From Paramoeba atlantica (Eukaryota > Protista > Discosea): a stretch of DNA of 64,000 nucleotides. Shown here piece after piece: positions 4,879 to 52,685 of the stretch. The first letter of the stretch is position 1. Each line of letters starts with the position of its first letter. The stretch lies in assembly GCA_977017575.1 (NCBI GenBank), contig CDRNVI010000039.1, forward strand, positions 372,001 to 436,000. Direction: 5' to 3'. The notes under the pieces were generated by a model. The model had not been told where the DNA came from. It ran no database searches and saw only the letters and a program-made list of their open reading frames with translations. The position numbers were made by a program, and so were the translations under genes.

Positions 4879-5593
4879 GCTATTCTATAAAAAAGGAAAG
4901 AAATTATTGTATAGAGTCTGTAAAGGTGAAGGATTTACGAAACAAACTATTTATTAAATTCTAGTTAAATTATTATTAACAATTCTAAGTTATGCATGTC
5001 GAGTTCTATTCATAAATAAACAAGCTTCCTGCTAACAATATGCTTAAAAACAAGCTTAAAAAAGTAAACTATTAACGAATGTTATAAAATCATGTAGATG
5101 CTTAGTGATTACCCGGTATTTTGAAGTCCAATGAATATGTATGTTCATGAGATGCGTTAGTTGCAAAGAAACAATTCCTGATACGAAGCACCAATCCGTA
5201 TTTACACTGAAAAATTGAGGTATCAGTCACGGGGTTACCTGTTATGAGTGTCATGTAAACTATCAAAAGAGATTCAAGGTTTCTCATCATTAGAAGCTGA
5301 CCTAATAGATTACAAGCAACAAAAGCTGTATCAAAGGTTTAGTAGTAAATTAGTTGATTATAGACCGAGTGAGATATAGGTAAGAAATTTAAAGTTCCTC
5401 TAAGAAATTACACGCATTGCGTAACCCAGTTTCTCTATTATAGCAGCTCATAGTTGTTGCGATAGAGAAACTACGTTCGCGAAGAAAAATACAGTGATTC
5501 GCAATTCTTCTAGTTATTTATACAACTAGTAATAAAGAGTTACTGATAAAAATTACTGTTAAAGAAGGACCACTATGGTACGCCAGAACTTTT

Positions 5594-7782
5594 TAGACTC
5601 TTCGTTAAACGCGGTGGTTGTTTTCAACTTAGCAGTCACTCATGCTGCGCGCTTCGCGTTGAAAACTACCACCGCGTTTAACGAAGAGCCTAAAAAAGAA
5701 AATTGACCTGGAAAGCTCGACAAAACGGAAAGATCATAGCCAAAAATAGCCCATTTTCAGGCAAAAGTGGGGCTAATTTTAGGTATTTCTGCTCTCAGAA
5801 CACTAAATCCGACATTTGCGCGTGGGAAATTACTCGTAGGCATGAATAAAAGCCTACCGAACGTATTGGGTAGAGAATACGACTCCAACCACACCATTCT
5901 TTCGACACAAAAAGGCCCCTTGGGGTCCGAAAAATACTTTTTCGCCTTTTTTAGTCAAAAATGGGTCATTTTGAGGGGCGTACCACGGCTCGAAGAAGGG
6001 ATATCTTGCGAAAACAACTGCAGAGAAAGCTAGTACAGGTCTCAAACTCTCAAAATACAATAGGGGAAACGATTTTGGATTGTTTTTTTTGCAATTCTTT
6101 TCGCCAAGTTGAACTTCTTTTTTAAAAAAAAATTCCGAAAAAATCCGAACTTGGCGGACCCGTCCTGCGGATACGCGGGGGGGTCACCCCCGGGTAGGGG
6201 GGTGGAAAATGCGCGCCAAGACCCCGGCTACCCCTTCTGCGGTTTCTTTTCGAAAACTAATTTTTTGACTACCCCTTCTGCGGTTTTTTTTTCGAAAAAT
6301 AATTTTTTCAAAAAAATTTGCTTGACCATGACACCCCCCTGGACCCCCCATTTTTTTCAATTTTTTTTTTCAATTTTGGACCACCGGAGCCCCCTTTTAT
6401 AAATTTTTCTTCTATTATAAACCCCGCGTCACCAATAAGTGACCACCCTTATTTTTAGCACAGGTGGTCGTGGGGGGGTTATCATACCACGTTGTCGTTC
6501 AAAATTTTGAGATCTGTACGTTCCCGCTGTTTTTAGCTCATTTTAAAACTTTAAAATTCAGTAAAAAAAAAAATTAATTTTTTCAACTTTTTTTTCAAAA
6601 ATGCCAAAATCACCATATCGACTCCCAAGAGGGGGGCTGACTTCTAGTGGAAAGGTTCTTTTAAAGATGAGGCACGGACAAGGAGTACCAATAAAAGAGC
6701 TAGCCCGTGATTTCAACGTTTCTAGAAGGATAGTTAAAAAATATTTGAACGAAAGAAAAACTACCCCAGTATACACTTTGAGTCCTGAGCGAAAAAAAAT
6801 AATGAAAACTCGTAAAACGAAAATTGAGAAGATAATAACCCCTCTTGACCCCGCTGGAGTACCGAGACTCAATTCATCAAGGCGCATAGCAGCCCAATTG
6901 AAGCCGCTCGACCGCTATGCCAAGGGCTTACCGAACGACAAAAAGTAAAAAGAGTTCAATTTGCGTTGAATAACAATATGGATACTTCCCGTGTCATCAT
7001 TACAGACGAAAAAATATTTGATACGAATGATGGCAGAAGAAAAATGTGGGTAAGGCGCGGTCAAAAAGCAGCCCCGCGTCAAAAAGTACGTTGGGCACCA
7101 AGATGCCAAGTTTGGGGTGCTGTAGGGGTGGGGTGGAGGTACTTGGTAATTCTACAAAATGACACATCTATTACAAGTGAGACGTACATAGAAACATTAA
7201 AAGAGGTAGATTTCCCCCCTAATCGTATTTTTCAGCAAGATGGGGCAACGGCACACACTGCTCGTGCCTCAAAGGAGTACGTTGAAAGCGCAATGAGTGA
7301 ACTTCTGAAAAATTGGCCCCCCAACTCACCAGATCTTTCCCCAATAGAAAACGTCTGGTCTATGGTCCAAGGGGCGGTGGACGAACAGACCCCATCGGAT
7401 AAGCCTTCACTCATCCGATGTGTACGCAAAGCGTGGTCTCGCTTGTCTCAAAATGTGATCGACAAAACGGTCTGAAGCTTTGACTCACGCCTTAAGGAGT
7501 GTATAAGATTGAAAGGCGAAAAAGTGAAAAAATGGTAATTCCTCAATTAAATATACGTATTCGCTTCTTTTAGTTTCATTCCTTCTCGCGCAAAGTCTTT
7601 GTGTTGAGATCTGCAAAATGCAACAAAAATCAGCTCAAACGGACACTTGTACGAAAAAAAAGTGGGGGGTCACTTTTCATGACGCGGGGTTTATTACTGT
7701 GTTCCTCTTTATATTTTCACTGTTTTTGTTCACTTTTTTTTCAATAATCGAGGGTAGAGCGGTAGTTATACAACCACCGCAA
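5594..7782. mobile_element. Repeat family B, copy 1: non-coding element with a long hairpin at one end and a short hairpin at the other (Helitron2/Helentron-like); interrupted by Tc1 element A1
   Basis: 35-bp-arm hairpin 5594-5692; body homologous to 21586-22016 plus 25249-25560 (inverted) and to 52686-53370; ends in GCGGTAGTTATACAACCACCGC-AA at 7759-7782. Confidence 0.7.
6420..7691 (+). mobile_element. Tc1/IS630-like DNA transposon A1 (DD35E) with a defective transposase
   Basis: About 30-bp imperfect TIRs (AACCCCGCGTCA...AAGTGACC), TA TSD at 6418-19 and 7692-93. Split ORFs 6601-6948 (HTH) and 6966-7475 (TDEK, QQDGA..HT, WPPNSPDLSPIE; 35 residues from D to E). Internal deletion/frameshift and a premature TGA. 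Confidence 0.9.
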
Positions 7783-8389
7783 TGACTACTATGAGTATAG
7801 TTGATGATATAGTACAGTGCCGTAGAACAGTAGTGCATTGAATATACTACATTCAATAAACAAAGGAGCATCCGAAGGGACTGTTTCTATTTCCCTTTTC
7901 TACGTTATTGTATTTATTTTCTCCTGGAGGTGATGAACATCGTCCATTTTCCCGTTTCCAGATAAATCCTGCTCAAAGACATAATTCTATTATGCTATAA
8001 TTACTTCAACAAAAACAGATATATCAGACATGAAAAATGTAATCATGGTCGAGGTAGAAAGGTCATCGTCGGATTGCGTATCATCATTGAAAGCGTGTAT
8101 ACACTACACAATACACAGCGTGTATACAAAAGTTACTGTAAACTTTAGAGGAAGTTACCCTTCCATAGGCGAAAATGTACCGAAACCTCACAGAAACCTC
8201 GACGCGCAGCCCCACATTTAGGGGGCTTCTTCAGTTCTTTTCATCTCATTTCTTCAGTTCTCTTCATTAAGTGCGAAGGTAGCTTCGAAAACTGAAAGAA
8301 AAAAGTGCACTATATGCAGACGTATTCATTTTTCAAGCTATAAAAGCATTTTGAGCTGTAAAAGCACTTTGAGCTTTTATATGAGGCCA

Positions 8390-9276
8390 ACACCAGTCTA
8401 TCCATCTAGTTTCGATGCACCGCTTCGGACACAAAGGTAGAAAGCGTGTCCGCAAGCCACGGCCCATGAGCACTGGACAGTGCACGACTGGGCTCCAGTT
8501 GTGTGGTCGGACGAGACGAAGATCTCGCGCTTTGAAACGGGGGGAAGTCTTTGGACATGGGGGACCCCGGGGGAGGAACTGGGTGAAAAAGGAGTAATTC
8601 CCACGGTGAAGTACGGAGGGGGGCACATCATGATTTGGGCGTGCATGTCTCGAAGCGGTGTGGGGCATGTGCGTCTAGTTCAAGGGAACCTGAATGCCAC
8701 GCAGTACGTCGAGATTCTTGAAGAGAATCTTTCCCCCCTCCATCGAAACTATGGGTCTAGACCCCCCAAAGGTCATCTTCCAACAAGATAATGACCCCAA
8801 GCACACAGGCCATTGTGCGCAACGGCACCTTCGGGGCACCTGGATTGAAGTCCTGCGGTGGCCCCCGCAGTCCCCTGACTTAAATCCAATCGAAAACGTT
8901 TGGGGGGAACTCAAGCGGTGCCTTGTAGCGCACGATGATCCACCAAGCGGGGTCCGAGAGTTGTGGGAGAGGGTAAAAATGGAATGGGCGAACATACCAC
9001 CCTCCGTATGTCGTGCCCAGGTGGACAGTATGCCTGCCGTATGATGGGCAGTGCTGAAGGCTCGTGGGGGGAATACTAAATACTAATTTTACGGGCATAA
9101 TCTCTCTTGGGCGATTACGTTTCATCTATTTTTTGGGACAAGATTTTCTCTATAATAGGTAGCAAAAAAACCTTTCGAATGCTAAACTTTTTTATATTCA
9201 TTCTTATTTCTTTGGTAGAGCGAACTGAGGTGAACTATCTACGGGTACTATTAGGTGACACTCATGCCTACACTAC
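8390..9276 (+). mobile_element. Tc1-like element C1 (DD34E), 5'-truncated and frameshifted
   Basis: Fragments WSDETK, TVKYGGGHIMIWAC, QQDNDPKHT, WPPQSPDLNPIE, ARGGNTKY*. Right end GCCTACACTAC|TA matches the terminal 11 nt of the C2 TIR. Confidence 0.85.
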
Positions 9277-9677
9277 TAGCACACATTACCAGCGCAACGG
9301 TGATATTTAATCAATGGCTCCATACAAAAGAAAAAGAAATCGAAACATTCGAACGGTTTTTTTGCTGACTGTATAAAATGAGCCCTTAACTGGGGCCTAT
9401 GGATACCTATGCAAAAAGTTTTGCATGTCATTTTCGTTCTTCTTTATTTTTTTAGTATGTTTTCTCGGCCTACCATGACTTCTTTTTTACATGTTTCTTT
9501 TACATGTACTCCTACATGTACTAATATGATTTTCATTTCAGATCTGCAATAACTTGACGATGTCTGCCTTTATGACTGTGCGGTTTTTATAATCTTTTCG
9601 ATCGTCTCACGTATTCGCGCTGCCCGAAAAAACGCCCAGTATATTGAAATGATGCGCACATTTAAAAAACCAAAAGA

Positions 9678-10487
9678 TTAAAAAACTTGGCTCCCTCGTA
9701 GTATTTTTTCCAGTGCATCACTGCTAATGGATCCTTCAAGAATTTTTAAGGGATTTTGTCCCAAGCGGAGATTTATGTCCTTTAGCTGATCGCTCTGTAG
9801 AGGAGATAGGTCCACTGTTCCCGCAAACAAGTTCGCATGAAGCCACAATAGCTCAATCCGGGGAGGCAGTGCATCAACAGTAATGGTACCTGAAAATCGG
9901 TTATGATTAAGCAAAATGCGACGAATTGTATGAGGTAAATGACAAAGATCAAGATGGCCGGAAAAGCGATTGTGATTTCCGTTAAGAATTTCCAGGCCTT
10001 CGGGAAGTGTGGAAAGCTGCAAAGAACCAAAAAATATATTATGGTATGTGTTTATATGTCGAAGAGAAGATGGTAGCGAACGCGTAGGAATTTCACCCGT
10101 AAGAGCAACGTGATCAGTGACAACAAGCTTATCTAGATGCCTAGGAAGGTCTGGAAAACTAATGTTCCCTTTCAGAGAAAACCGCAGTAACTCAGCTCTC
10201 CAATCAATGCTAACTACATTCATCTCTTTGTCGCAGAATACACCCTGCCAAGTGCACACTGAAACTGGTTTTCTTGGAGTTTTCAACAGACCACCAATAA
10301 AACTGTTTTTAAATAAAATCCAAGAAGCATGACGAACAACCAGTTGCTCCGTAAGTTGCCACATCAGTGTATCTTGAGAAAGGCACTCCCGGTTTACCTT
10401 TCCTCGACGAACTTCCAGTGGTTCGTCGCTACAACTGCAATCTTTGACAGCAAAAAAAGTTGTCACTAAAACTACAATCGTGTTCAT
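9678..10487 (-). CDS. Leucine-rich-repeat protein with a predicted signal peptide
   Basis: Hydrophobic N-terminus, C.W.GV.C cap (VCTWQGVFCD), repeats LPxxLxxLxxxxNxFxGxxxL. Confidence 0.88.
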   Translation of the reverse strand: MNTIVVLVTTFFAVKDCSCSDEPLEVRRGKVNRECLSQDTLMWQLTEQLVVRHASWILFKNSFIGGLLKTPRKPVSVCTWQGVFCDKEMNVVSIDWRAELLRFSLKGNISFPDLPRHLDKLVVTDHVALTGEIPTRSLPSSLRHINTYHNIFFGSLQLSTLPEGLEILNGNHNRFSGHLDLCHLPHTIRRILLNHNRFSGTITVDALPPRIELLWLHANLFAGTVDLSPLQSDQLKDINLRLGQNPLKILEGSISSDALEKILRGSQVF

Positions 10488-10874
10488 TCGATGATATAAA
10501 TAATTTACTAACTCTATAGAGGATATATTTATTGAGTATCCGCTTCTAAATAAATACCAATAGATAAAAATCCATCTTAGACAAACCTAGATAAATGCTT
10601 GTAAGATCCAGATAGACTAAATATGTTTGCTAATTCGCGGGTGAATGAATTAATTTGCGGATGAATAGATCTTGTTCATTCGCAGACGCACACATTCAGA
10701 AAGAAACTTGGTGTAAGTGTAACAAAATGAAATGCACTTAATTTTGAGGTCAACTAATTTAGAAATCTATGTTATGTGATGGTGACATTTTCAATAAAAT
10801 ATGCACAAAACTAAAAGTTTACAAGCTACTAAAAATCATTATTTTCTATTGTCCAGCACATTTTGGGAAGTGCC

Positions 10875-13800
10875 TTACCGCTTGCGGCGTTTCTTGCTGG
10901 ACCAACTGGTGCGCTTTTTGTTCACTCTTCTAGGAGTCATACGAGTTGTACAACTGCTTTCAGACTGACATTCTGATGTTAGTGATTCGGACTCATCAGA
11001 TGTTGAAGACAAATGTCCAGTTGTCTTCGCACTACGAGCGGCAATCCGTGCACTACGCCGCATAGGATTTGGTGACGATTTAGGAGATGAAACGTTAGGC
11101 AATGCAGGATTCGACTCGTGCGCATGAGAGGACTCAGTTTCATGATCACTAGATGACGAAAAATAGCTTCTTCGCCCTTTACGAGACTTTATACTTTTTT
11201 TTACATTTTTCTCTGCACTTCGAAAGTTGGTTTCCCTCCTCGGAAAGGGGAGCGCCAAGCTAGGATCAACGGAAATACTTCTAGGCTTAATGGTGGCTGC
11301 GCGATGCTGAGTTGGGCGACGGGTCAACCTTCGCTTTGGTAAAGATTCTTGCGAAGTATCTATTTCACTACTTGCGCTGTGGGTATCGTGTTCGCGCCAT
11401 ATTTCGCTGCGTCCTCCAAGCATAACGCTGCATTCTGCTTCCTTTAATTGTGCTGTCCTAGAGAATTCTTTGTTTTTTGGCTCTTGTTCGTTATCATCAG
11501 CAGCTTCCGATGCAGTTCCCAACTCTATACTAGAGGAGACATCCACTTCCGCATTAGGTACTTCAGAATAAGATGCAACGGATGCTGACAATTTGGTTTC
11601 CCATTCTTCCAACATAGCGGTACGTCCTCTTTTCTCCCACGTATTAGATTTCGCTGCATCAGTGCTCTCTTCCGCCGCCTGGCCGCTACTCGTAGACGCT
11701 GCAAATCCTTTCCGAGACTTGGCTAATATAGAAAAGAAGTGCTGGCGCACCTGTTCGTCGAAAAGCCACTTTTTATAACAAGTAAAGCACGCATCACTTA
11801 CAATCTTCTGTATTGCTTTGTCACTTTGATAATTGAACTCTGTTAAGCAAAAGCTCAGATATTTTGCATTTATACGGGCCGATTGGGCTATGCCATTAGA
11901 TCCTATGGTAGGAAATCTTTGACACAGTTTCTCTATAGAACTTTCAGTTTGTCTGTCTTTTTCAATTTTTTCAATGACACAACGCATCACAACCTGAAAC
12001 TTATGCTCCGCAGTACGAAACTTTGTGCAGAGATGCATACAAATGCTGGGAAGAAGATTATAAATAAGACGCTTGTTTTTATTATGCAGCTCGCGTAAGA
12101 ACACTTCGCCCATTTTCCTAATCTCGATATCGTCATCAGCAATCAGGACAAGAAGATGAGGTGTCATTTCAGGAACGCGAAGCATATCGTTTAAAGCAAG
12201 GTGAGTACAAACCATGACAGTGGTTGACCGCACCCGACGGTTCGTCCCTTCTCGAAGCAAAGACGTAAGGTGGCCTTTCGAAGGATGCAGATACGGTTGG
12301 ACAAGGTTCGGATGACAACACAGCAGATCCCCTAAACTAATAAGACAGTTCGTCCGAATCCACCATTCAGATGAGCCCTTCAAAACAGTAAACAGTACGT
12401 CAATATATTTTCGACACGTTTTCTCATCAATAATCATTAGTTTTGATAAAGTCAACATTGCAGTCGCCCGTAGTGTAGAATTTTCAATGATTTCTGTATC
12501 CAAAAATCCGGATACAGAATCTCCTGGATCGAGAGTATTTTCAGGTAACAACTTGGTAAAAGACGTCGAATCTCCTACCCAATGCAAAACTACTGCAAGA
12601 TAAGGTGCATATAACCCTGTTGCATCCATAAGACTCGTGCGTGCCGCATCTGCCTGTTCCCGTATTTCTTCGCGTTTGTACTCCTTGCTATCAAAGCCCA
12701 ATTCTTTTTGCATTGCATCAGAACCTTCGTTAGCATTGCGGTGTTTGCTGTCGTTCTGCGACTTCTCTAATTTGTGCATCGCCGTACGCTCCCAGTTGTC
12801 TACATATACAAATTCCTTTAGTGCGGCGTGACCAAGAGCAAAACAGAACTGAGTTAAGGAATTAATTGCTCGACCAGGTATATGTGCCTTTGGATCATTT
12901 TTAATTTGATCCTGCCACTGTTTTAAATCAGATTGTGCACGATTACGCAGGACCATCACAGCATAAGAGAAGGCTTCCCTGGGAGAATTACACAGCGTGC
13001 CGATGGCACTCATTACACAATCAGCCATCATAAGCCAATTGTGAATCTTGCTCGTTCGATGACAGAGCAATCCGCGGAGCTGTACTATTAATGGATCTTC
13101 TGCTGAGAGCAAACTAAAAGATGAAAGTAGTCGCAGCCTTTCAAGTGCTTGACAAGCATAAGCACACAGCAAATGATCGTGAAAAAAGTTTGGAAACAAA
13201 TCCTGTAGCATGTCGGGAATACGCTCGCGAACACCTTTCGGATAGGCGTAACTTATCATGGCGAATAAACGCATTGATTTTTGATTCTCTATTATTTCAG
13301 ATACTTGGTTGTTGGAAGTTGCCTCACCGATATTATCAAAGCGTTTGCTTAGTGCAAGGCTCCACAAAGTACCTAGTAAGTCATCTGTGATAACGTTCTG
13401 CGTGGTGGATTGCTCGGGTAGCTGCTGACATATAGTTTCCATTGCTGCAAGAAAACCCTCACCTGCGCGAGAAACCACACTCATGAGTTTTCGTACACAC
13501 GCAAGATTCCTCTTTAATAACGGGATATTTGTTTGCTTGCGATAATTTAAAAACATTGTGTTGGCAAAAGAAATTCTAACCGCTTCTTGAATCTGGGGTT
13601 CGTTGGAATACACCAGCGGAAAGACGTGATGGGCGTGCTCTACTGCGTAATCAATGCGATACTCGTTTGCTAAGGAAATGAAATCTATACTTTCTAGCAC
13701 ATCAAGTACAACTTTGCTATTTAAGAGTGAGAATGCAGTGTCCACCGCTCGATGGAGACTGCCGATAAAAAGTATTCCTCGCTTATAGTGCTCGATCTTA

Positions 13801-16169
13801 TTTGTACTATCAGACTTCAATTGCTCAAGTTTTCGAATCTCCATATTTTGTGTTGAAGAGGCAACTATGTCGAGACTATCTGATAATTCATTTGGCTGAC
13901 CTGTGAACACTTCAGGACTGCAAATATTTTCAGATGGCTTTGTATTAGACTCAGTTCCAACGAGCTCGTAGATGTTAGCCTGAATTCTCTGTATTTCTTC
14001 CTCAATTATCCGAAGCTTTTCCTCAAACTTTCCGAGACTTAAGCAACGTCCACCAACACTGTTTCGACGAACAGCGATATGCAAGAGTGAAAAAGCCGCC
14101 TTTCGCACATGATTATTTCTATCTGCCAGGCGTTGAACTGCACATTCTACCACTTGAAGCTGATAGGTGAGTGGCACTGAACGCCTTTCCCATAAATACG
14201 ACCATACTTTAAGGCAGTGCGTCCGGACTACTGGATTGATATCCATAAATCGGGCTAACAAATCCGCTAAAAACGACTTCATGATCACATTAAGAGAGCA
14301 TGTATCACTCTCTGTTCCATCTTGAAGCAAAATACTACCACCAAAAGCAACACTCGCACTTCGATTATAAGTGGACACGCTAGAGCTACGTAACAAGAGT
14401 GAAGGTCCTTCAGTTCCATGTTTTTGTGCCACAAGTTCGGTAATAGCAGTCATCACAGTTTTTCGAATATCGTAATTCTCGCATGCATTAAGCAGGGGAT
14501 GAATCAATGAAATATGTTCTGTTACCGTCGTGATGTGGTTCTCGCTTAAGTAGTCAAAAAAAAGAACAATGTTTTTCGCCGTGGCTGAATCCATATTCAG
14601 GACAGAATTGCTGACATAATGTATAATTGTAGGTTCTTTGTTCATGGGTATTTTGGTCGACATGTCTTCAGGGGTTGCATTCGAATTCATGTGTATATTT
14701 TCACAAGAATTTAGATCAGGGGCAGAGGAAGAAACAGAATCGCACACATTGGTAGCAGGAGGCTTCTGCAAATTGACACCACTTTCAACTCCACAATATC
14801 CTGTGAGCTGCTCGATGAAGGCATACACAATGCGTTTCGCCCATGGTCTCATGTACGTCTTTTCGGGATTGGTACATTCACTTAGGAGTACCTCCAGTTT
14901 TATGATCTCATCGTCGCTTGACACAAAATCACGGTCCATGACATGCAAAAAAGTTGCCATGTATTGTGCAACGAAGTCATATTTCAATATGAGTTCACAC
15001 AATGGAGTTATCACGATGTCTCGTACATCTCGATGGACGCTGCACATTCTCAAATACCGGAATAGAGTATTCTTTTCTGTAAAAGAGTCTTCGCTCGTTT
15101 TAGAACATTCTTCATCCCATTTTGGATCATTACCTTTTAATTCGGAAACGCTGGAATTTTGGCTACCACATTCCTGAAGAGGAACATCAACATCCTGGTC
15201 TATTAATTTCGGCCACTCTCTGTCCTTGAGTTTAGTGTAATGATAAGCAAGTGCAGCAAGCAACAGATGCAAGACTTGACCAACGGCTGTCAATTCGCCG
15301 GCCCCACCTGCCCCGCTAAAATCAAATAAATTTCCCTTTCGAAGCAAAACTGCAATACACACAGTAAGTAGGCAATTGAGCATAGATTCTTCAATGTGAC
15401 CGGACCCTTCAGTGGATGAAGACGCTTGAATAGGTGTTTCTTGCTCTGATATGGAACCTCCAGACCACACAGCGGTGAGATCTGATGAAAGCAATTCTTG
15501 CAGCGCTGTGAGAGCCATTTCCTTAGTACTGAGATCAATAACGGCACTGACTTCTTGGGCTGCTCGTTGATGGGCCGCTCTTCCACGCTTGCGAGACGAC
15601 GCAAAAGAACGTTGTGAAGACACTTGCGAAGCAAGAGCATCATCGCCTGTTCCATCTGCAGGCACTGTAGTATCTTCTACCAGAAGTAAAACTTGTGACA
15701 GTAAAAAGCAATACATTTTCAGTGCGCTACGAGCCAAAATGTAAAATCGACTGTTTAAGCCTCTAAGCCCACCGCTTGAGGCTCTGGCCCGACTAATCAC
15801 CTGGGCCACTTGCTTACACAATCTGGTGAGGAGTTGCGGTAATTCATGTGACAGAGTCACTTTACACTCTCTAGATAAGCACTTTTTGTGGCGAAGAAAA
15901 CTGTATAGGGTATCAAATTTTCCGCTCTGTACCACGGACAGAACACCTCCACCGTCTCGGCGATTTAATTCGTGCAATATTGCCTGCAAAGTACTTATTT
16001 GTTCAGATGCGCTCATGGTGTCGACTTCCATAATACCGTCAACGTAATACACGTTGGGTAGCCTTCGGTCCGGATCTTCTACTTCCAAGTCTTCTAGCCG
16101 CCGAGGAATAAAAAATTCAGAACCAACTCCATCTTCAGACGTTTTTATCTCAGGGGGGTGATGAATCAT
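10875..16169 (-). CDS. NCAPD2: Condensin complex subunit 1 (CAP-D2/Cnd1/Ycs4), 1764 aa
   Basis: HEAT-repeat protein with Cnd1 motifs IRTNCLISLGDLLCCHPNL, VCTHLALNDMLRV, IYNLLP, DRNNHVRKAA; low-complexity basic C-terminal tail. Confidence 0.88.
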   Translation of the reverse strand: MIHHPPEIKTSEDGVGSEFFIPRRLEDLEVEDPDRRLPNVYYVDGIMEVDTMSASEQISTLQAILHELNRRDGGGVLSVVQSGKFDTLYSFLRHKKCLSRECKVTLSHELPQLLTRLCKQVAQVISRARASSGGLRGLNSRFYILARSALKMYCFLLSQVLLLVEDTTVPADGTGDDALASQVSSQRSFASSRKRGRAAHQRAAQEVSAVIDLSTKEMALTALQELLSSDLTAVWSGGSISEQETPIQASSSTEGSGHIEESMLNCLLTVCIAVLLRKGNLFDFSGAGGAGELTAVGQVLHLLLAALAYHYTKLKDREWPKLIDQDVDVPLQECGSQNSSVSELKGNDPKWDEECSKTSEDSFTEKNTLFRYLRMCSVHRDVRDIVITPLCELILKYDFVAQYMATFLHVMDRDFVSSDDEIIKLEVLLSECTNPEKTYMRPWAKRIVYAFIEQLTGYCGVESGVNLQKPPATNVCDSVSSSAPDLNSCENIHMNSNATPEDMSTKIPMNKEPTIIHYVSNSVLNMDSATAKNIVLFFDYLSENHITTVTEHISLIHPLLNACENYDIRKTVMTAITELVAQKHGTEGPSLLLRSSSVSTYNRSASVAFGGSILLQDGTESDTCSLNVIMKSFLADLLARFMDINPVVRTHCLKVWSYLWERRSVPLTYQLQVVECAVQRLADRNNHVRKAAFSLLHIAVRRNSVGGRCLSLGKFEEKLRIIEEEIQRIQANIYELVGTESNTKPSENICSPEVFTGQPNELSDSLDIVASSTQNMEIRKLEQLKSDSTNKIEHYKRGILFIGSLHRAVDTAFSLLNSKVVLDVLESIDFISLANEYRIDYAVEHAHHVFPLVYSNEPQIQEAVRISFANTMFLNYRKQTNIPLLKRNLACVRKLMSVVSRAGEGFLAAMETICQQLPEQSTTQNVITDDLLGTLWSLALSKRFDNIGEATSNNQVSEIIENQKSMRLFAMISYAYPKGVRERIPDMLQDLFPNFFHDHLLCAYACQALERLRLLSSFSLLSAEDPLIVQLRGLLCHRTSKIHNWLMMADCVMSAIGTLCNSPREAFSYAVMVLRNRAQSDLKQWQDQIKNDPKAHIPGRAINSLTQFCFALGHAALKEFVYVDNWERTAMHKLEKSQNDSKHRNANEGSDAMQKELGFDSKEYKREEIREQADAARTSLMDATGLYAPYLAVVLHWVGDSTSFTKLLPENTLDPGDSVSGFLDTEIIENSTLRATAMLTLSKLMIIDEKTCRKYIDVLFTVLKGSSEWWIRTNCLISLGDLLCCHPNLVQPYLHPSKGHLTSLLREGTNRRVRSTTVMVCTHLALNDMLRVPEMTPHLLVLIADDDIEIRKMGEVFLRELHNKNKRLIYNLLPSICMHLCTKFRTAEHKFQVVMRCVIEKIEKDRQTESSIEKLCQRFPTIGSNGIAQSARINAKYLSFCLTEFNYQSDKAIQKIVSDACFTCYKKWLFDEQVRQHFFSILAKSRKGFAASTSSGQAAEESTDAAKSNTWEKRGRTAMLEEWETKLSASVASYSEVPNAEVDVSSSIELGTASEAADDNEQEPKNKEFSRTAQLKEAECSVMLGGRSEIWREHDTHSASSEIDTSQESLPKRRLTRRPTQHRAATIKPRSISVDPSLALPFPRRETNFRSAEKNVKKSIKSRKGRRSYFSSSSDHETESSHAHESNPALPNVSSPKSSPNPMRRSARIAARSAKTTGHLSSTSDESESLTSECQSESSCTTRMTPRRVNKKRTSWSSKKRRKR

Positions 16170-16195
16170 CTAGTATATAGAAAAAGTGAAAAAGT
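16170..16195 (-). promoter_or_regulatory. Putative trans-splice acceptor (polypyrimidine tract plus AG) of the condensin gene
   Basis: Minus strand reads TTTTTCACTTTTTCTATATACTAG|ATG. Similar tract+AG arrangements precede the ORFs at 4878, 36189 and 61100. Confidence 0.6.
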
Positions 16196-16582
16196 ATCGC
16201 CTTTAGCACGTACATGTATGCATAGATGAATAAATTTAAAATATACATAAATTTGACATAGAAAAAAAGTAGAAAAACCACAGCAGACACATTAGGAGTT
16301 TGATGTCAGCTTGTATTATTTTTATGTACGCTTGTATTATTACAAAGGGATTAATATAAAAAGAACAAAACTTTAACAAAATATATTAAAAGGATATGAA
16401 ACCCCCTAGTCCCACCGGAAGCCTACTCCCTAACGCCGAGACGGTACCAATCTTGTACCGCCGCCTGATTAATATTCTATTATAAAAAAATTAATATTAT
16501 TAACTTTTTTAATCCTATTAATAAGTCTTATGTTTGACAAATTAGGATATCATACATGTTGTACATGTACAACGCGAAATAT

Positions 16583-17800
16583 CTATGTTTTTTGTTTGAC
16601 CACATTTTTTAAGTTCTCAACGTGATAAAAAGAATGATCTTTATTAGCAATATATTTAGGATCAACAAAGAAAACATGACCCAATTGCTTCCTCAACCAA
16701 GTGACAAGCTGCTTCGGAAGAAGAAGTGCAACAAGTGTTTCAGTTGTAGGGAATGCGCGATCGCAAGAACTAGATTCCGAAGTCAACTCTCTACCAGCTG
16801 ACTCCGTAAAACTACGCCTGTGGAAAATGCCAAGACGGGTAATAGTATCCGTGACTGTGTCCGGGGAGAAACCTGTGAGATTACAAATCAAGCTCAAGCT
16901 AACGGTCATTTTGTTTCTCTGTTTTTCAATTTCGCGCAAAACTACTAAATCCCAGTACTTGAAAAAAAGAGCCTTCCCGTATGGACTTAGCGGCCCTTCG
17001 GGACCTGCAAATACGTTTGTCCCTGAAAGACATAGCCGTCGACACGGCTCGTAGCTTAGGTCAACCAGAAAGCTTGCATGACCGAGCCTTTGATAAGGCG
17101 GGAAAGTTACAATACATGCCAGGTTATTTACCAAACTGTATTTGTCTCGACTAAAAAAAGAGGTTATCACACCCTTTTCGCATTCAATGGAGTCGTTGTA
17201 CACACAACTGGTCTCTGAATAAGCCACTAGGCAATGAAACTCATATCGATCGACATCGTAGCGTAGCCATTTATCTTCAAGAAAAAATTTTGCTAGTAGA
17301 CACAAGTATCGGCAGAATCGGCGTTGCTTCTCCCCTGAAACGAAGTACACCTTTAGTTTCTTAATAGGGTCATGATAAATCACCTCTCCTATCTCTAAAA
17401 CGCAACGGGAGCTGTGCCTTGTGTGCTCAAAATGTGACGCAAAAGGACGCAAACAAAGACAGCAAATCCAGATGTCTCTCCATAGTGGATTGCATTCAGA
17501 AGGTGGGATCAGTCCTGTCACATGAATGGGGGAATAATACCACGGGTGCATGGTACGATTGCTATAGTGTATGTTCAGAACATTGCGTGGCCTTCTTCGA
17601 TCATGTTGAAAGCGCTCTTCTAAATACGTATCCCCGTCCTTTATGTCGACCCATTCCCACGCTACAGGAAATTTATCCGAATGTGCTTTTTGGCACGTCA
17701 TCCATTCGTCCATTGCCGGGTCCTCATTTTCGATATCTCGCACGCAGTACCGTGGTTCGGATTCTCCAGACACCTGACATGCATTAATCACGACCTTCAT
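16583..17800 (-). CDS. MYST-family histone acetyltransferase
   Basis: PWYYSP, C2HC zinc finger (CCLCLRPF...HSSRC), LCLLAKFFLEDK, NNLACIVTFPPYQRLG, LSYE, GPEGPLS with the catalytic Glu. Confidence 0.9.
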   Translation of the reverse strand: MKVVINACQVSGESEPRYCVRDIENEDPAMDEWMTCQKAHSDKFPVAWEWVDIKDGDTYLEERFQHDRRRPRNVLNIHYSNRTMHPWYYSPIHVTGLIPPSECNPLWRDIWICCLCLRPFASHFEHTRHSSRCVLEIGEVIYHDPIKKLKVYFVSGEKQRRFCRYLCLLAKFFLEDKWLRYDVDRYEFHCLVAYSETSCVYNDSIECEKGVITSFFSRDKYSLVNNLACIVTFPPYQRLGHASFLVDLSYEPCRRLCLSGTNVFAGPEGPLSPYGKALFFKYWDLVVLREIEKQRNKMTVSLSLICNLTGFSPDTVTDTITRLGIFHRRSFTESAGRELTSESSSCDRAFPTTETLVALLLPKQLVTWLRKQLGHVFFVDPKYIANKDHSFYHVENLKNVVKQKT

Positions 17801-18532
17801 ACCTTATGATGGTAACACGACCATCATAACCTTATGCTCATCGAAACACATAAATTTCTATAGGCCTAATAACGATTATGTAATATTAAATTACTTATTT
17901 GTCACCACTTTTTCGAAAAAAGTACAATTAAGAGGAGTGACTCCTGCCCGGGCGCTCCCAGTAAACTTCTACGGAGATCCGACTTGGTAAAATGATTTTT
18001 TCTCAAAGAGGTCCGGAATCCTCAATGTCCCTTGGATGGAACATGCTGGGCTAACACGACAAAGAGTTAGAAAGGGAGACTGGCGTTGGGCTGTCGTCGG
18101 TGATGGGGCGTGGCGACCCTAGCCTTCCGAAGTAAGGACTTCCAGCTAGCTGCAGGGATTCGTCCATTCCTATTCCTGTTTAACCCCTATTCGCGGAGTC
18201 GTTAACCGCGTTCCGGGGTTGTAAGACGGCGTGGCATGTCCATCTCCGGGAATACGTTGTTAGCACCACCTTTTCTCGCGTGCCAACCTTGTAACCTCGG
18301 TGGAGGTGGGACTGCACTCGTGCAAGCTGTGGTCGAATCCCACCCCATCTCCGGAGGAGTGGAGGCGTAAAAAACTTCGTTTCTCCAGCCAGGACCGTCC
18401 CGGACCAACCATCTGGGATAGTGGAGTTTTAGCGGGTGAGCTAGCAGAGTCCCTGACGCAGTCCGATACTACAACGCTCTGCTCATTCGACCAAGAAAAG
18501 CCCACTGTTTGGACGGTGCTAACGTTAGGTGT

Positions 18533-18680
18533 ATTGCGGTGGTTGTTTAACTACCGCTGTACCCTCGATTATTAAAAAAAGTGAACAAATTTTCCACCCC
18601 CACGTGGGGGTGACCCCCCCCCCTGGTATCCGCAAGATGGGTCCGCCAAGTTCGGATTTTTCACGAAAAAAAAGTTGGAA
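18533..18680. repeat. Internally deleted fragment of family B (short-hairpin end, inverted)
   Basis: ATTGCGGTGGTTGTTTAACTACCGC...CCCTCGATTATT followed by GGGTCCGCCAAGTTCGGATTTT, matching 21586-21640 and 21840-21910. Confidence 0.7.
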
Positions 18681-18701
18681 AAAATTCTAGGCGGGATCCT
18701 A

Positions 18702-18910
18702 GGCGCTCCCACCCAGAGTCACCCCTCTAAGCACAATGTATTGTTAACGTGTATTACATGCCGAAACCCGCGTTTAAGTCCTGCAGAATAACAATTCCAG
18801 TAACATGATTTCTGTATCTTCCGATTGAAGCAAAAAATATTAAGAAGCTAAGGAAGAAAATTTTGACGAAAGATATCCTTGGCGCTCCCACCCAGAGTCA
18901 CCCCTCTAAG
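18702..18910. repeat. Pair of perfect 30-bp direct repeats
   Basis: GGCGCTCCCACCCAGAGTCACCCCTCTAAG at 18702-18731 and 18881-18910. Confidence 0.85.
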
Positions 18911-19179
18911 TGGGGGGGTCAATGTATTTGGTTAGATAAAACAAAAGTCCCAAACTTTTTTCATTATCTTAGGAATCTCCAAAGCGTTCGGATAAAGTTG
19001 GCTTTACCGAAACGGTATCTTTATCGTATGAGTAGGTTTTCTACCTTTCCCGTACTAGTATAGTAGTAGTTTCTTTTGTCAAACCGCTATAAGGTATGGG
19101 GTTTGATAGAGCACCGACTCGTGGGGCAGGAGGGCGTATTGTAACCCAAGCATCAAGGCGACGTGGGCGAGACGACTGG

Positions 19180-19310
19180 GATGGTGGTGGGGAATGACTT
19201 TTCGCAGTGAGGGAAGAAGGGAGTGGCGGTGGTGGGGAATGGTTGTTCGCAGAGAGGGGAGAAGAAGGGAGTGATGTTGGAGGACAATGACGGTTCGCAG
19301 GGAGAAAGGT
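19180..19310. repeat. Degenerate purine-rich tandem repeat (unit about 48 bp)
   Basis: GGTGGTGGGGAATG...TTCGCAG..AGGG..GAAGAAGGGAGTG occurs about 2.7 times. Confidence 0.6.
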
Positions 19311-19488
19311 ATAGCGTATTGTGATATGAAAAACTTGAAGTAGACAGTATATAAATACAAACTGACGTCGGGTCCTGATATACATGTACTGTACAGTAAC
19401 TAACAAAAGTGTTCAAATGTTTTCACAAATTTTAATGTTTTTATATTTTATAAAAGAGATGCAGAGGATAATGCAGTAGTATATTATA

Positions 19489-20752
19489 GCAGTGTAGGCT
19501 GGAGTAGTGCTTACATTCCCACATACTTAGACTGCATCAACGATCTTACTATAAAAAACTATGAAAGATATAATCCGAGCCCAACACTCGAACACTTTTT
19601 TCACTTTTTTGAGAATATTTTTTTTGACCAAAACTTTGTCTTACTTCACCCTTACCAAACCAAAATGACCAAAACTTAATACTTCGTAAGTCCCCCCTTC
19701 GCCCTAATTACTGCCCTTAAACGACGGGGCATGCTGCGGACAAGAGGAAGACATGCACTCGGAGGAAGGTCTGCCCACGCTTTTTGGGCGCGTTCCCAAA
19801 GTTCCAACATTCCTACGGGAGGATCTGGGTGATCCGCAGTTGACTTTTTGAGCTCGCCCCATAGGTGCTCTATGGGATTTAAATCGGGAGACTGCGGGGG
19901 CCATCTAGGACACACAATTCTTCCAAACGAAGGAATTCCCGAGCCTTCTTACTCGTGTGCTTTGGATCATTATCTTGTTGGAAGATGATACGGCTCTTCA
20001 TGACATCCACCTCGTAGAGGGAAGGAGGCAAATACTGTTGAAGTATTTGAACATACTGTTCAGCATTCATGTTGCCATGAACCAGAGCAATGGAGCCCAC
20101 ACCGTGAGCCATCATACACCCCCATACCATGATGGATCCTCCACAGTACTTCACGGTGCTGTGAGTATTTCGCTCTGAAAGTGCTTCCCCAAAGCTCACC
20201 CACGCCCACCGGCTGCCGTTCGACTCAAAACGGCAGATCTTACTTTCATCGGTAAAGAGCACACGGCTCCAGTCGGCGTGCGTCCAATGCTCGTACTTCT
20301 TTGCAAAAGCAAGACGTAGAGCTTTGTGACGCTTCGTGAGATGGGGCTTCCGTAATTTCTTCTTCCCCTTCAAACCACGCTTCCGAAGGGAAACCCGAAT
20401 GGTTTGAGGTGAAACATCTGCAAATTTCTTCTTCCCCTTCAAACCACGCTTCCGAAGGGAAACCCGAATGGTTTGAGGTGAAACATCTGCAATCCCCTCA
20501 TCTCTTAACCGTTTACTAGTAGCGACTGCATCCTTAGTTGTACCGCTGGTGATAAGGCGGCGGACGCGATTGGAGGATGTCTCGGTAAGCTTGCGAGGGC
20601 GACCTGTTTTTTGTTTGCTAAGTAAGTTGGGAAGGTACTTTTTTTTAATGCTGCTTACATTTCCTACGCTTAATTGTAGTGAAAGTCCTACGCTTAATTG
20701 TAGATGAAGTCTAAGTACGTGGGAATGTAAGCACTACTCCAGCCTACACTAC
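19489..20752 (-). mobile_element. Tc1-like element C2 (DD34E), near full length and frameshifted
   Basis: About 51-bp TIRs G(C/T)AGTGTAGGCTGGAGTAGTGCTTACATTCCCAC..., TA TSD. ORF pieces FTDESK, QQDNDPKHT, WPPQSPDLNPIE, AKGGLTKY*. Contains a 69-bp tandem duplication at 20354-20491. Confidence 0.92.
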
Positions 20753-20817
20753 TATAATACTCCCCCTCTCATTAATCGCTATAATTATAATCAATAAACC
20801 TTTTTAGTTTATAATTA

Positions 20818-21585
20818 TAACCCAGGCTAAAGTGGACGAGGGAGATACTAAAAGTACCTTTGGAAAAGCACCACAAAACTGGAACGGTATCTCCCGGTTT
20901 GTAAAGCATTCTGATGTGACGAAAGGATCTTTACCGGGAGATACCGTTCCAGTTTTGTGGTGCTTTTCCAAAGTACTTTTAGTATCTCCCTCGTCCACTT
21001 TAGCCTGAGTTACATAGCCATCGAAATATGCTCCCTAGGACCCCCTTACAGCTTCCCACGCGAGGAAGTCGTCGTCGCCGCGACAAAAAAACAGAAGGCT
21101 CCGCCTTCTGCCTTTTTGCCTTGCGCCTCCTCCTTCCTCTAAGGTCTTGTGTGTCACACGCTTCCAGGTACATTTTGGCCTTTGTAGGTGTATTACCGGC
21201 ACAGGGTGGAGGAGCATCGAATGAAACCAAAGAGTACACGGGCATATCAGGTCCCAAACTATCAAAAAATGGTCTAGGAGTTGATTTGGGAGAAATATAT
21301 TTTTTCACTTTCACCCATAAATTTGCTGTTTTTTTTTTAAATTTCAAAAATTGCTATCATCACCCTGGTGGGGAGGGGGGGGGCAGGGGGTACCCATCGG
21401 AATTGTTGAAAAACTAGTGATCTTGTCACTGAATTCGATTCATACGTCTTTGTAAACAGTTTTTTCGAAAACTCACCTGAAACGAAATCGGGCCACAAAT
21501 CGGGCACGAAATCGGACCAGGATCGGGCATGAAATCGGGCACGACGAATTAACCTACGGTAGCGAGGGAGTAGTATCTCCCTCAA
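20818..21585. mobile_element. Repeat family D: about 190-bp foldback hairpin, body, then a short hairpin ending in AA (same architecture as family B)
   Basis: Arms of about 80 bp at 20818-20900 and 20930-21012; short hairpin GAGGGAG-TAGTAT-CTCCCTC at 21564-21583 reuses the arm motif TAGTATCTCCCTC; partial second copy at 53590-53760. Confidence 0.65.
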
Positions 21586-22410
21586 TTGCGGTGGTTGTAT
21601 AATTACCGCTCTACCCTCGATTATTGAAAAAAAGTGAACAAAAACAGTGAAAATATAAAGAGGAACACAGTAATATAATAGAAGAAAAAAATATAAAAGG
21701 GGGCTCCGGTGGTCCAAAACTGAAAAGAAAGAGTCTAGGGGGGGGGTCCATGGCGGGGGTCATGGTCGAGCAAATTTTTTTGAAAAAATTTTTTTTCGAA
21801 AAAAAAACGCAGAAGGTGTAGCCGGGGTCTTGGCGCGTATTTTCCACCCCCCTACCCGGGGGTGACCCCCGCTCGTATGCGCAGGACGGGTCCGGCAAGT
21901 TCGGATTTTTTCGGATTTTTTTTTGAAAAAAATTTCAACTTGGCGAAAAAAATGGCAAAAAAAATATTTTTCCAAAATCGTTTCCCCTATTGTATTTTTA
22001 AAGTATGGGACCTATAAACACCTCGACACGAATAAAGCACCCCCCTTTATTTTTTGCGTGCGGGGACCCATGGGGGTTGCAGCACCACTTTATCGTCTAG
22101 AATTTTGAGTTCTGCACGTTCCCGGGGTTTTTAGCTTCATTTAAAACTTTTAAAAAAATCAGTTTCAGAAATATTCTTTTTCTAAAATTTCATGGTAAAA
22201 TCCAAGTACCGTCCCCCAAAAGGGGGGATGACCTCTATAGGTAAGACATTATTGCGCCTGAGGTTCGAGCACGGTGTCCCAAAGAAGCAACTTGCACGAG
22301 AATTTAATATTTCTGTAAAATATGTGAGGCAATATCTGAAAGTAAAAGAAACCAATAAAACCAAAATATTTACACCGAAAAAAAATATCTTACGTCGCAG
22401 AAAAAAATAG

Positions 22411-23991
22411 CGCTCCACGGGCACTTCCGTGAGTTTTTGAGACACTTCGATGATTTCTCATCGAAGTGCCTACGTGTCACAGGGTGACTCATCGAAACGT
22501 CAATCTTCTCATCGAAGGTGATTTTAATTGCTTTGGAAAGAAAAAAATCGAGAACATGAAAATAAGAAAGCGGCGACACTGAGAACCTATGTCTGCCACT
22601 TCCGCAGGATTGTGTATTATTCCTATACTGCGAGACCTAGTTTGCGAGCAAGGCCCAACTGTGAGCGTGGGTTTATCGGTATCTGTAGTTTGCGAGCAAG
22701 GCCCAACTGTGAGCGTAGCCCACGTTTTTCCCTTCGAACGGAGTTCTACACGTTGTAGCTCTCGTGATAAAAATTACTAGGCTGTTCTATTTTACTTTGG
22801 TTTCGTCCCTTCTTTTTAATGAATAACAGTCAAGCGGGGAGTGCACGTGAACCTCTTTTGAATAGTTTTGTGCGTTTCGTAGACAGCGAAATGCGTCGCA
22901 CTCAAGAACAAGAGGAAGAAGAAGAGTTACCTCGCACTCCAGAGGAATTACGAACTCCTGGTGTCTGGGCTGACAGACTTATTTTTAGCCCCTTGGTTGG
23001 GGCCGAAGCTGCTGCACGTACTTTGCTTCCGTCAGTTCGTGTATGTCCAGGTTGTGCTGAGTTTTCTTGTGTGCGCGCGTGGCGAAATTTTAATATGATC
23101 CCTCAAGGCAAGCGTGCAGAATCCTGGATGAAAAATCACGGTCTGTTGAAAGCACCTTCTTGTACTGTGCATGGTCCAAGTATGATGCGGGATATACCCG
23201 GAAGGCCTAACATCCAAATGTGCTGTTTTCATGAATTCCAGCGCAATCCGTGTCGGATGAAGCGAGGAAAACTTGAACCTTATGCGTCTGGTCGAATGGA
23301 CATTGACGCGGGAAAATTGCTTCGAATTTGAGCAGATATTGCCGATAATTTGACAGCGGGCCAAATTGCGAGAAACCGTTCCATTAGGCACAAGGTGGTG
23401 ACGAAAATTCTACACGACTTAGGCAATGCAGCACTACACCAAGAAGAAAATGCGGTATTATAAATCTAAATCTATAATTCTATTTTCTGTACATACTTCT
23501 TTTCATGGCCACTGTAAAGTGGCCATAGGTCAGGGGCATTGTATACAATGCAGGGGCCTAGCGACCCCCGCCTTCCGAGCTTTTCCGTCCACAGCAACGG
23601 TTTTTTGTACATATTTTTTTGTCTCGTATCTGAGTTTTCTGTGGTTTTCTTGGTGCCGTGCGAATCCTAGGATTTCTTTGTCCAGGTAATTTCTTAATTA
23701 ACTCACGCGCGCTTCCATTGTTTCATATGGTATCAAGCTCTTTAAATCAATGGAAAATCGTATTTCTAAGAAGAGTCACGGGCATTATTTTGCTTTCACG
23801 TTTCTACAATTTATTTTCGCAACGTTTTCTTTAACTTTCATGACTGCACCAGCGTTTGCTCCCGAGTCGAAAATGCAGCTACCACCTCAAAAGTAATTAA
23901 AATCACCTTCGATGAGTTTCTTTCGTTTCGATGATTTTCGTTTTGACACGTGGGCGTTTCGATGAGTACTCACGGAAGTGTCCTCGTACCC
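22411..23991 (+). mobile_element. Merlin/ISXO2-like element, internally deleted
   Basis: 8-bp TSD AAAAATAG (22403-10 and 23992-99). About 110-bp imperfect TIRs with CACTTCCGTGAGT and repeated TCATCGAA; 31-bp direct repeat near 22637 and 22685. ORF 22819-23331 resembles the zinc-ribbon N-terminus of the Merlin at 50000 (W...HGLL...C..H...CC...C). Confidence 0.7.
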
Positions 23992-24768
23992 AAAAATAGT
24001 AACCATTATTTCACCAAAAGACCTTGCTGGAGTGCCGAAACACAGCAGCGCTAGATGCATTGCGGGGAGATTGAGTAAAAAGGGGGTACATATCACAAAA
24101 CGCACTGTTCAACGTGACTTAAAAGCAATGAAATATACTTATTCCCCACGCCCGGTTACTATGGCGTTGACCGAACATCAGAAGGCTAAAAGGGTTGAGT
24201 TTGCCTTAGCATGGAATGGGGATTCACGCATAATTGTATTTTCTGATGAAAAAATCTTTGATACTAATGATATGCGTAAAAAAATGTGGGTTGCCCCGGG
24301 CGAAAAGGCTGCTCCAAGGCAGAAAATGCGTTGGGCCCCAAAATGCCATGTGTGGGGTGCCATTGGAGTTGGGTGGCGTTATCTAGCTATTCTTCCCAAT
24401 GACAGCTCAATTACGAGCGAAACGTATATTTAAACCCTGCGTAAGACTCCTTTCCCCCGTTATTTTATTTTTCAACAAGATGGAGCAGGCGCACACACTG
24501 CAAAAATGACAAAGTCTTATCTTTTTGAATCAGAAATTCAGTATATCAAAAATTGGCCTGCCAACTCACCTGACCTCAATCCTATAGAAAATGTATGGGA
24601 AATGATACAGCAACGAGTATGTGGAATGAACCCCTCCAGTACTACTTCGCTTATTAGGTGCGTAAAAAAGCATTTAAAGAAATCCCCCGAAGGCAAATAA
24701 ATAAAACTGTTTTAAGCTTCGATCGTCGACTAGAAGCCTGCGTAAAGTGCAGGGGAGAAAAAGTGGTA

Positions 24769-25092
24769 CAGTGTTATATTTAATTGCGGTATTATTTAAT
24801 TACGCTTTTAAGGTTATTTTTGGCTAAAATTAATCTTAATTAAACCGTAATGTAATCCACTCGTAAATTAATAATTTTTGAACACACTTTTTGAGTAACT
24901 TTTAAGCACCCAAGCCATTGGATTCGTCTGTGATCATTTTATAAAGGTTTGTGTTTCGTATGAAAGTGAGGTCGATGGTGATAGACATCAAAAAAAAGTA
25001 TTTTTTTTCGGGGCTAAAAATAATCTTAATTAAAAATAACCGTAATTAAAAATAACCGTAATACAATGCACTCGTATTTGGATACTTCACTG
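24769..25092. mobile_element. Tc1-type MITE inside A2
   Basis: TA|CAGTG...CACTG|TA with inverted TTACGGTTATTTTTAATTACG-like subterminal repeats; the same end (ATACTTCACTG|TA) also occurs near 55970. Confidence 0.65.
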
Positions 25093-52593: not shown

Positions 52594-52685
52594 AGAGATC
52601 GTCCTGATAGAGCCCGAAAAATGAAAGTGCTATTCAGTACCCGAGGATATGTCCATGTATATGTAAGTATAGTCAGTGTAATAAT

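Follow-up and report, generated by a model that had tools for sequence, protein, structure and literature searches.

Two families of short non-coding repeats, designated B and D, were found in a 64,000-nt stretch of DNA (C39:372001-436000, here called the window) from a 45.7-Mb eukaryote assembly of 248 contigs. Both are very probably non-autonomous Helitron2-type rolling-circle transposons that are moved in trans by the Rep-helicases of larger master elements located elsewhere in the genome. Two such masters were identified: Hel-B, which carries the ends of B, and Hel-E, which is related to D. The assignment to Helitron2 was made by termini, domain content and insertion pattern. The original prediction, made from the letters of the window alone, had described two unrelated families and compared them with non-autonomous Helitron2/Helentron (HINE) elements or another HUH-mobilised system. 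The Helitron2-type part of that comparison is retained, but a strict HINE or Helentron identity is not, given the missing endonuclease domain. The families are indeed unrelated in sequence, but not in origin, as they appear to be two branches of one transposon superfamily.

At the start of B, D and Hel-E stands TT, and after it a motif of 11-13 nt (GCGGTGGTTGT in B, GAGGGAGATAC in D) that makes up the 5' arm of a mini-hairpin of 7-9 bp. The 3' end is a long palindrome, of ~110 nt in B and ~195 nt in D. In all three elements the reverse complement of the motif is found in the distal palindrome arm, 18-27 nt from the 3' end; the proximal arm contains the motif exactly in D and Hel-E and as a slight variant in B. 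The ends are linked through a terminal inverted repeat that is asymmetric, in which the partner of GCGGTGGTTGT is ACAACCACCGC in B, and that of GAGGGAGATAC is GTATCTCCCTC in D and Hel-E. By our own estimate, the chance of an exact 11-nt inverted match between the first 13 nt and the last ~40 nt is ~1e-5 per family. The motif sequences of the two lineages are wholly different and the layout is common to both, in agreement with the design originally proposed, a short motif shared asymmetrically between ends that both have hairpins.

Folding placed hairpins at both termini, the 3' one being far longer than in published descriptions of Helitron2. The long hairpin of the first B copy in the window has 39-nt arms that are 95% complementary and folds at -45.8 kcal/mol (z = -11.1; none of 200 shuffles folded as well). 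Its short hairpin, GCGGTAGTTATACAACCACCGC at 7759-7780, is followed by AAT at 7781-7783 and folds at -7.9 kcal/mol (z = -4.9). The D palindrome, at about 20818-21012, reaches -97.5 kcal/mol (z = -25), and the short hairpin of D, GAGGGAG-TAGTAT-CTCCCTC at 21564-21583, is followed by AA at 21584-21585.

Genome-wide, 29 matches to the Pfam family Helitron_like_N were detected, 25 of them above the Pfam cut-off, in open frames of up to 2975 aa. None of the 29 falls within the window, as had been noted when no Rep or helicase open reading frame (ORF) was seen there. It had been suggested that the assembly be searched for Rep-helicase ORFs lying between the same hairpins, and Hel-B was found with the ends of B. 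This 12.86-kb element (C43:151112-163969) starts with ATTGCGGTGGTTGTAAAACTACCGC in ORF orientation and terminates in the B palindrome and an A-rich tail. Its 2975-aa ORF (L029:2883 to L030:1807) matches Helitron_like_N (E = 5e-21), DUF6570 and PIF1 (E = 8e-26) and keeps the catalytic motifs, HUH as HFH and the two-tyrosine motif as YLIKY. Hel-B is present in at least five copies, with 5' flanks that differ at C43, C41, C52, C38 and C47 and 3' flanks that are unique at C43, C52, C41 and C47; at C109 and C20 another B copy begins immediately after the palindrome. Among the copies are long open frames of 2975, 2257 and 1642 aa. B matches Hel-B at both ends and is 94% identical over the first ~870 nt; evidently, B is the first ~870 nt of the master joined to the master's 3' palindrome.

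The masters are composite. The start of Hel-B (C43:151112-152881, L029:1113-2882) consists of two tandem B-like units, each with a partial 3' palindrome: the loop and distal arm are missing from unit 1, and the distal arm from unit 2. A short D-like unit at C99, D2, likewise keeps one palindrome arm. Placed upstream of the ORF, terminators crippled in this way could guard against premature termination. Hel-B also has, downstream of its Rep-helicase ORF, a 113-aa ORF matching RRM_1 (L030:2303-2641, E = 5.6e-07), which is kept in seven copies and is probably a captured or accessory gene. A further group of Rep matches (C67 and C100) was considered as a third lineage and rejected as a decayed relative of Hel-B.

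Hel-E was found at C99 as an open 2130-aa frame (L060:492-6881, minus strand) with Helitron_like_N, DUF6570 and PIF1 domains and with intact catalytic motifs, HMH (HUH) and YLFKY. The Hel-E and Hel-B proteins are 24% identical over ~1600 residues. Homology between the C99 copy and a decayed copy at C86 begins exactly at ATTGAGGGAGATAC (also written ATTGAGGGAGATACGGAGTATCT), and the upstream flanks differ. At the 3' end, a 206-213-nt palindrome occurs in C99, C86 and C40/C102 (the last two copies share their downstream flank), beyond the ORF and a 112-bp satellite and 4-6 kb downstream of the Rep domain. This palindrome folds at -114.9 kcal/mol (z = -28), contains CGAGGGAGATAC...GTATCTCCCTCG and has the terminus CAATCTGGGT(T). 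D and Hel-E share an identical first 13 nt, TTGAGGGAGATAC. Aligned matches number 35/57 at the 5' end and 51/78 at the 3' end, including GTATCTCCCTCG and CTGGGTT; the common blocks are CTCGCT-AC, AGGTTAATTC, the stem motif and the CTGGGTT end. D is best read as a passenger of Hel-E or of a lost close relative.

The only D-type 5' motif candidate near Rep matches, C99:29102, was rejected as a D master because it belongs to the separate short unit D2, with half a palindrome and other repeats after it. The true 5' end of the C99 Rep-helicase element is located another 6 kb inward. A weak match to the Ulp1-type Peptidase_C48 (E = 0.014, below the Pfam cut-off) came from the 280 C-terminal residues of Hel-E (L060:492-1331, minus strand). 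In both master lineages a 112-bp GC-rich repeat is located between the Rep-helicase ORF and the 3' end (L030:2040-2215 and C99:10826-12775, also C56, C83, C38 and C34), and at several loci it has expanded to satellite arrays beside the 206-nt palindrome. A tandem array at C21:764729-782370 (L062 = C21:764400-767100) has ~2.0 kb per unit, each with the 206-nt palindrome, a cysteine-rich ORF and a tRNA-like GGAGGTGGCGGAGT..., and no TTGAGGGAGATAC 5' end.

Both families are abundant. The B-type 5'-end motif was found 952 times genome-wide and the D-type motif TTGAGGGAGATACTACTCCCTCGCTACC 146 times; a reversed-pattern control gave 0 in each case. A first look yielded 1195 candidates for the B palindrome, in which both strands were matched per locus, so that ~600 loci are represented, and 197 candidates for the D palindrome. 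The best-scored 40 B palindrome loci are 97-100% identical, and many genomic D copies are 83-89% identical. Twenty loci picked by their palindrome alone gave a canonical B unit of ~940 bp. The spacing of ~0.9 kb between the ends of B, as first described, therefore holds for this unit, but not for the first B copy of the window, which measures 2.19 kb from end to end. B units often follow one another head to tail, in arrays joined by ...CCTAAAAAAGAAAA-TT-GCGGTGG...; at two loci, C21 and C43, the junction reads GAAAA-TT-GCGG with exactly two T's. Chimeric copies were observed at C83:17180-18300 (L052) and C40:934550-935650 (L053), where CCTAAAA, the end of a B palindrome, passes directly into a D body that is truncated at its 5' side and starts at an internal TT; the D palindrome comes next.

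One exact empty site was recovered. In the duplicated blocks C73 and C23 (L046/L047) a D copy lies inside a B copy, and deletion of TTGAGGG...CCTGGG (736 bp) restores CTTTATATTTTCA, the sequence of ten uninterrupted B copies. This match means that the D insertion added its core and two T's, and nothing else, which agrees with the predicted absence of target duplication. As anticipated, B starts with TT when read from the short-hairpin end (32/33 copies). The base before TT is A in 29/33 B copies and in 9/10 D copies, so the T on the other strand, described as always flanking the short-hairpin end, is frequent and not invariant. After the B tail the next base is T in 50/52 cases. TT follows CCTGGG in 21 of 23 D palindrome ends, a count that includes the reverse strand of the proximal arm, and in all of ten aligned D 3' ends.

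The proposal that the elements finish in ...CTAA (CTRR) was not upheld. Most B copies continue beyond CTAA to GAAA(A), the consensus running to CTAAAAAAGAAA(A), and D ends in CTGGGTT. Since between 0 and 9 purines come after CTAA, the 3' end of B is ragged and a CTRR reading fails. Helitron2 elements insert between T and T; the insertion sites here read A-TT...T(T), and the D-in-B site is compatible with A^T(T) and AT^T alike. A paralogous site of B (window 18339 compared with L015) has a single T and would favour A^T, on a left-flank homology of only ~12 nt, which is weak.

From this anatomy we infer an order of cuts, a recognition of hairpins and a circular intermediate, as follows. The HUH/two-tyrosine Rep domain would recognise the shared stem motif at both ends and nick the 5' junction just before or within TT, after which the Pif1-like helicase would peel the strand off. 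The 3' palindrome would fold in the displaced strand and mark the second cut, which in B would be imprecise within the A-rich tail, with T next. The joined circle may then re-enter at an A^T(T) site without target duplication. Head-to-tail arrays and B/D chimeras could arise from a missed terminator, or from insertion exactly at the A^TT end of a resident copy.

Several points weigh against a Helitron2-type origin of B and D. No master with the exact termini of D was found, and Hel-E matches D in the outer parts of the ends only. A search of PDB sequences with the Rep region returned no Rep relative, the matches being cellular Pif1 helicases only. For D, a 2-bp TT duplication is formally possible because TT stands on both sides of the core; it does not fit B, of which only 29/52 3' flanks read TT. 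Finally, the whole case is built on sequence. A less likely variant of the explanation is that both lineages represent a deep, undescribed euglenozoan Helitron2-like branch with a motif read as a hairpin at both ends, as in IS608, and a giant palindrome as terminator. There, the 3' cut might be set by distance or by the first T instead of by sequence, giving ragged tails, and the half-palindromes in the 5' leader units of the masters might protect from early termination.

Other explanations were weighed against Helitron2-type mobility. It is improbable that B and D are inactive remnants, multiplied by segmental duplication and by satellite-type unequal crossing-over and not by ongoing rolling-circle transposition. 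As that explanation would have it, the assembly does contain tandem arrays and near-identical duplicated blocks (C39/C40, C30/C3, C73/C23 and C67/C100), but dozens of palindrome copies that are 97-100% identical have unrelated flanks, Hel-B copies combine distinct flanks with long open frames, and both D and Hel-E-type elements have inserted into B copies.

Mobilization by an IS200/IS605-type single-tyrosine (Y1) HUH transposase is still less probable. Such enzymes also use subterminal hairpins at both ends, and the asymmetric ends and the lack of target duplication would fit. The genome has two Y1_Tnp matches, C95:26313-26675 and C126:14596-14949, but these are the only loci, one is broken by stop codons, and no B or D sequence occurs within 2-3 kb around either; the early suggestion of a Y1 TnpA bounded by the element hairpins was therefore not borne out at these loci. 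Moreover, B termini directly bound a Rep-helicase ORF at five loci. The two Y1_Tnp matches have host-like GC content and may be contamination or a separate HUH element.

Least credible is that the long palindromes are independent foldback elements or miniature inverted-repeat transposable elements of a DDE transposon such as Tc1/mariner, accidentally linked to the bodies: DDE_3 and Tc3-type ORFs do lie inside two B copies and the 206-nt palindrome recurs without a 5' partner in the 2-kb array on C21, but the Tc1-like elements are bounded by inverted ends and TA duplications of their own and are missing from canonical B, the palindrome is attached to a B-type body in 20/20 of the loci picked by palindrome alone, the number of 5' ends (952) is comparable in magnitude to that of palindromes (~600 or more), and no TA duplication is seen at the one exact empty site. 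Hairpins standing mostly alone with TA duplications, which the original prediction named as the pattern of independent elements, were not seen in the sampled loci. Nor were the symmetric terminal inverted repeats and fixed target duplications of DDE elements; the ends are asymmetric, with no duplication beyond the ambiguous T's.

Among known systems, the Helitron2 elements combine a terminal inverted repeat that is asymmetric with a hairpin at each terminus, and in FoHeli1/2 of Fusarium oxysporum nucleotides of the 5' hairpin recur inverted inside a 3' hairpin (PMC5148889). The elements described here resemble FoHeli1 and FoHeli2 in having a Rep-helicase without an endonuclease domain, hairpins at both termini, T-flanked and T-rich ends, no target duplication, and joined ends or arrays. 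They differ in the 3' structure, a near-perfect palindrome of 110-213 nt instead of a short hairpin, and in starting with TTG... where FoHeli has TCAG...ATTTT. The masters, at 12-13 kb, also differ by a crippled passenger-like 5' leader, the 112-bp satellite and extra ORFs or domains (RRM, possibly Ulp1-like), and the host is a putative euglenozoan-like protist. DINE-1/HINE, the non-autonomous Helentrons of Drosophila (PMC4067079), are comparable to B and D as short non-coding passengers of the Helentron/Helitron2 branch that are abundant and have hairpins and subterminal inverted repeats. An AP-endonuclease domain is encoded by Helentron masters, whereas Pfam detected no endonuclease family in the whole Hel-B and Hel-E proteins.

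With IS200/IS605 elements (IS608 TnpA) B and D have in common the use of an HUH enzyme, ends that are asymmetric and strand-specific, each with an imperfect hairpin, and the absence of target duplication. Those elements are bacterial, with a single-tyrosine enzyme and no helicase, whereas here a two-tyrosine Rep is fused to a helicase. Canonical Helitrons (Helitron1) have 5'-TC...CTRR-3' termini and a short hairpin 10-12 nt from the 3' end, and insert between A and T. The present elements are similar in the Rep-helicase with HUH, two tyrosines and a Pif1-like helicase, in a 3' hairpin terminator, in the lack of target duplication and, in most copies, in the A before the 5' end and the T after the 3' end. 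In contrast to canonical Helitrons, they begin with TT and not TC, they finish in GAAA(A) (B) or CTGGG(TT) (D) and not in CTRR, and they have a 5' hairpin as well as a terminal inverted repeat that is asymmetric. Elements of this kind are already known, as the Helitron2 variant, which lacks the Helentron endonuclease; what is new is the size of the palindrome (110-213 nt), the composite masters and the host.

Within the window, the first B copy spans 5590-7782 and reads 5' to 3' on the minus strand. Its 3' terminal palindrome, the terminator end, occupies 5590-5700 (arms 5590-5628 and 5658-5696) and its non-coding body 5701-6419, which matches both the B unit and Hel-B. Positions 5590-6266 share 91% identity with the ~940-bp B unit of the tandem array on C21, as do 6333-6419 with a later stretch of that unit, and 5657-6266 are 89% identical to positions 283-896 of Hel-B. 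The 5' end at 7692-7782, with the mini-hairpin at 7759-7780 and the terminal TT seen as AA at 7781-7782, is 98% identical to the first 92 nt of Hel-B. This copy measures 2.19 kb because a 1272-bp Tc1/mariner-like element (6420-7691, plus strand) is nested within it, a later insertion and not a Helitron part. TA is found at 6418-6419 and 7692-7693, the inverted ends are AACCCCGCG...CGCGGGGTT, and an ORF at 6966-7475 matches DDE_3 (Pfam, E = 2.3e-16). This ORF was rejected as a transposase of B itself, since the element that carries it is nested and has separate ends and a TA duplication; canonical B copies are without the insert.

A B 5' fragment at 18533-18687 (plus strand) begins with ATTGCGGTGG at 18533 and matches positions 1-59 and 339-433 of Hel-B; the mini-hairpin end is kept and the body is internally deleted. 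Another ATTGCGGTGG, at 54625, was rejected as a B end and regarded as a chance match. The D copy, at 20819-21585 on the minus strand, consists of a 3' terminal palindrome (20819-21012, arms of ~80 nt, minus-strand end ...CCTGGGTT) and a body with 5' end (21013-21585) that includes the mini-hairpin at 21564-21583 and the terminal TT, seen as AA at 21584-21585. It is directly followed by the second B copy on the plus strand. The 5' part of this copy (21586-22016) matches positions 1-181 and 231-516 of Hel-B with 90-91% identity, and its continuation (25249-25565) is an 88% match to positions 507-819 of the B unit. The two parts are split by a 3.2-kb Tc1-like insertion (22017-25248), in which an ORF at 23978-24433 matches HTH_Tnp_Tc3_2 (Pfam). 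The 3' palindrome of this copy is missing, and no palindrome was found downstream of the continuation.

D and the second B copy meet head-to-head, 5' end to 5' end, at 21577-21591 (CTCAA^TTGCGG, with a palindromic AATT), where the TT of each element complements the preferred flanking A of the other. Because of this complementarity, one of the two probably inserted exactly at the end junction of the other. A third B copy at 52685-53377 (minus strand), with its palindrome at 52685-52794, represents a diverged subfamily, and its 5' end is truncated; a D fragment at 53585-53743 (minus strand) is 86% identical to D positions 447-610. An inverted, near-identical copy of window 5590-21584 was found at C40:458112-474118, its B and D pieces being 99-100% identical; by this identity it would be either a haplotig or a very recent segmental duplication. 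Similar near-identical pairs are C30/C3, C73/C23, C67/C100 and C8/C52.

The host genes of the window (FEN1, a MYST acetyltransferase, MCM, ABCE1, a NOP2-type methyltransferase and others) have long ORFs without interruption, and almost all of them share one strand. On the plus strand, a 630-aa ORF at 56824-58716 that runs antisense to this gene cluster gave weak hAT matches (DUF659 and Dimer_Tnp_hAT). An Rfam search of the window gave no match. Elsewhere in the assembly, a spliced-leader-like sequence, ...ACAGTTTCTGTACTTTGTTG (also ...GATACAGTTTCTGTACTTTGTTG) followed by GTA, was found at C14:90259-93280 (L065) and C23:255060-255081, the only two matches at one mismatch or fewer. Presumably, ...ACAGTTTCTGTACTTTGTTG with GTA is similar to the spliced leaders of kinetoplastids and diplonemids in their 3' half; a search of the literature with this string returned no match. 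The tentative host label, kinetoplastid-like or euglenozoan, derives from the gene layout and this similarity. In a survey of 57 genomes, no DNA transposons were reported from trypanosomatids, and earlier reports of Helitrons were treated as false positives (PMC12278014). ORFs of Diplonema resemble Helitron proteins (PMC10161547).

With ~950 B ends and ~150 D ends, these passengers of two Helitron2-type lineages that look active amount to the order of 1 Mb of the 45.7-Mb genome, so that a large repeat class is explained. Their arrays and nested Tc1 elements carry a risk of mistaken annotation as satellites or as miniature inverted-repeat elements. The two Rep lineages, 24% identical and located in one genome with the same end grammar and different motifs, are suited to testing how Rep proteins recognise their ends. 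A kinetoplastid-like genome with open Rep-helicase frames of 2130-2975 aa would widen the range of the superfamily, and if the host is a true kinetoplastid, the published statement that this group lacks Helitron transposases would be overturned.

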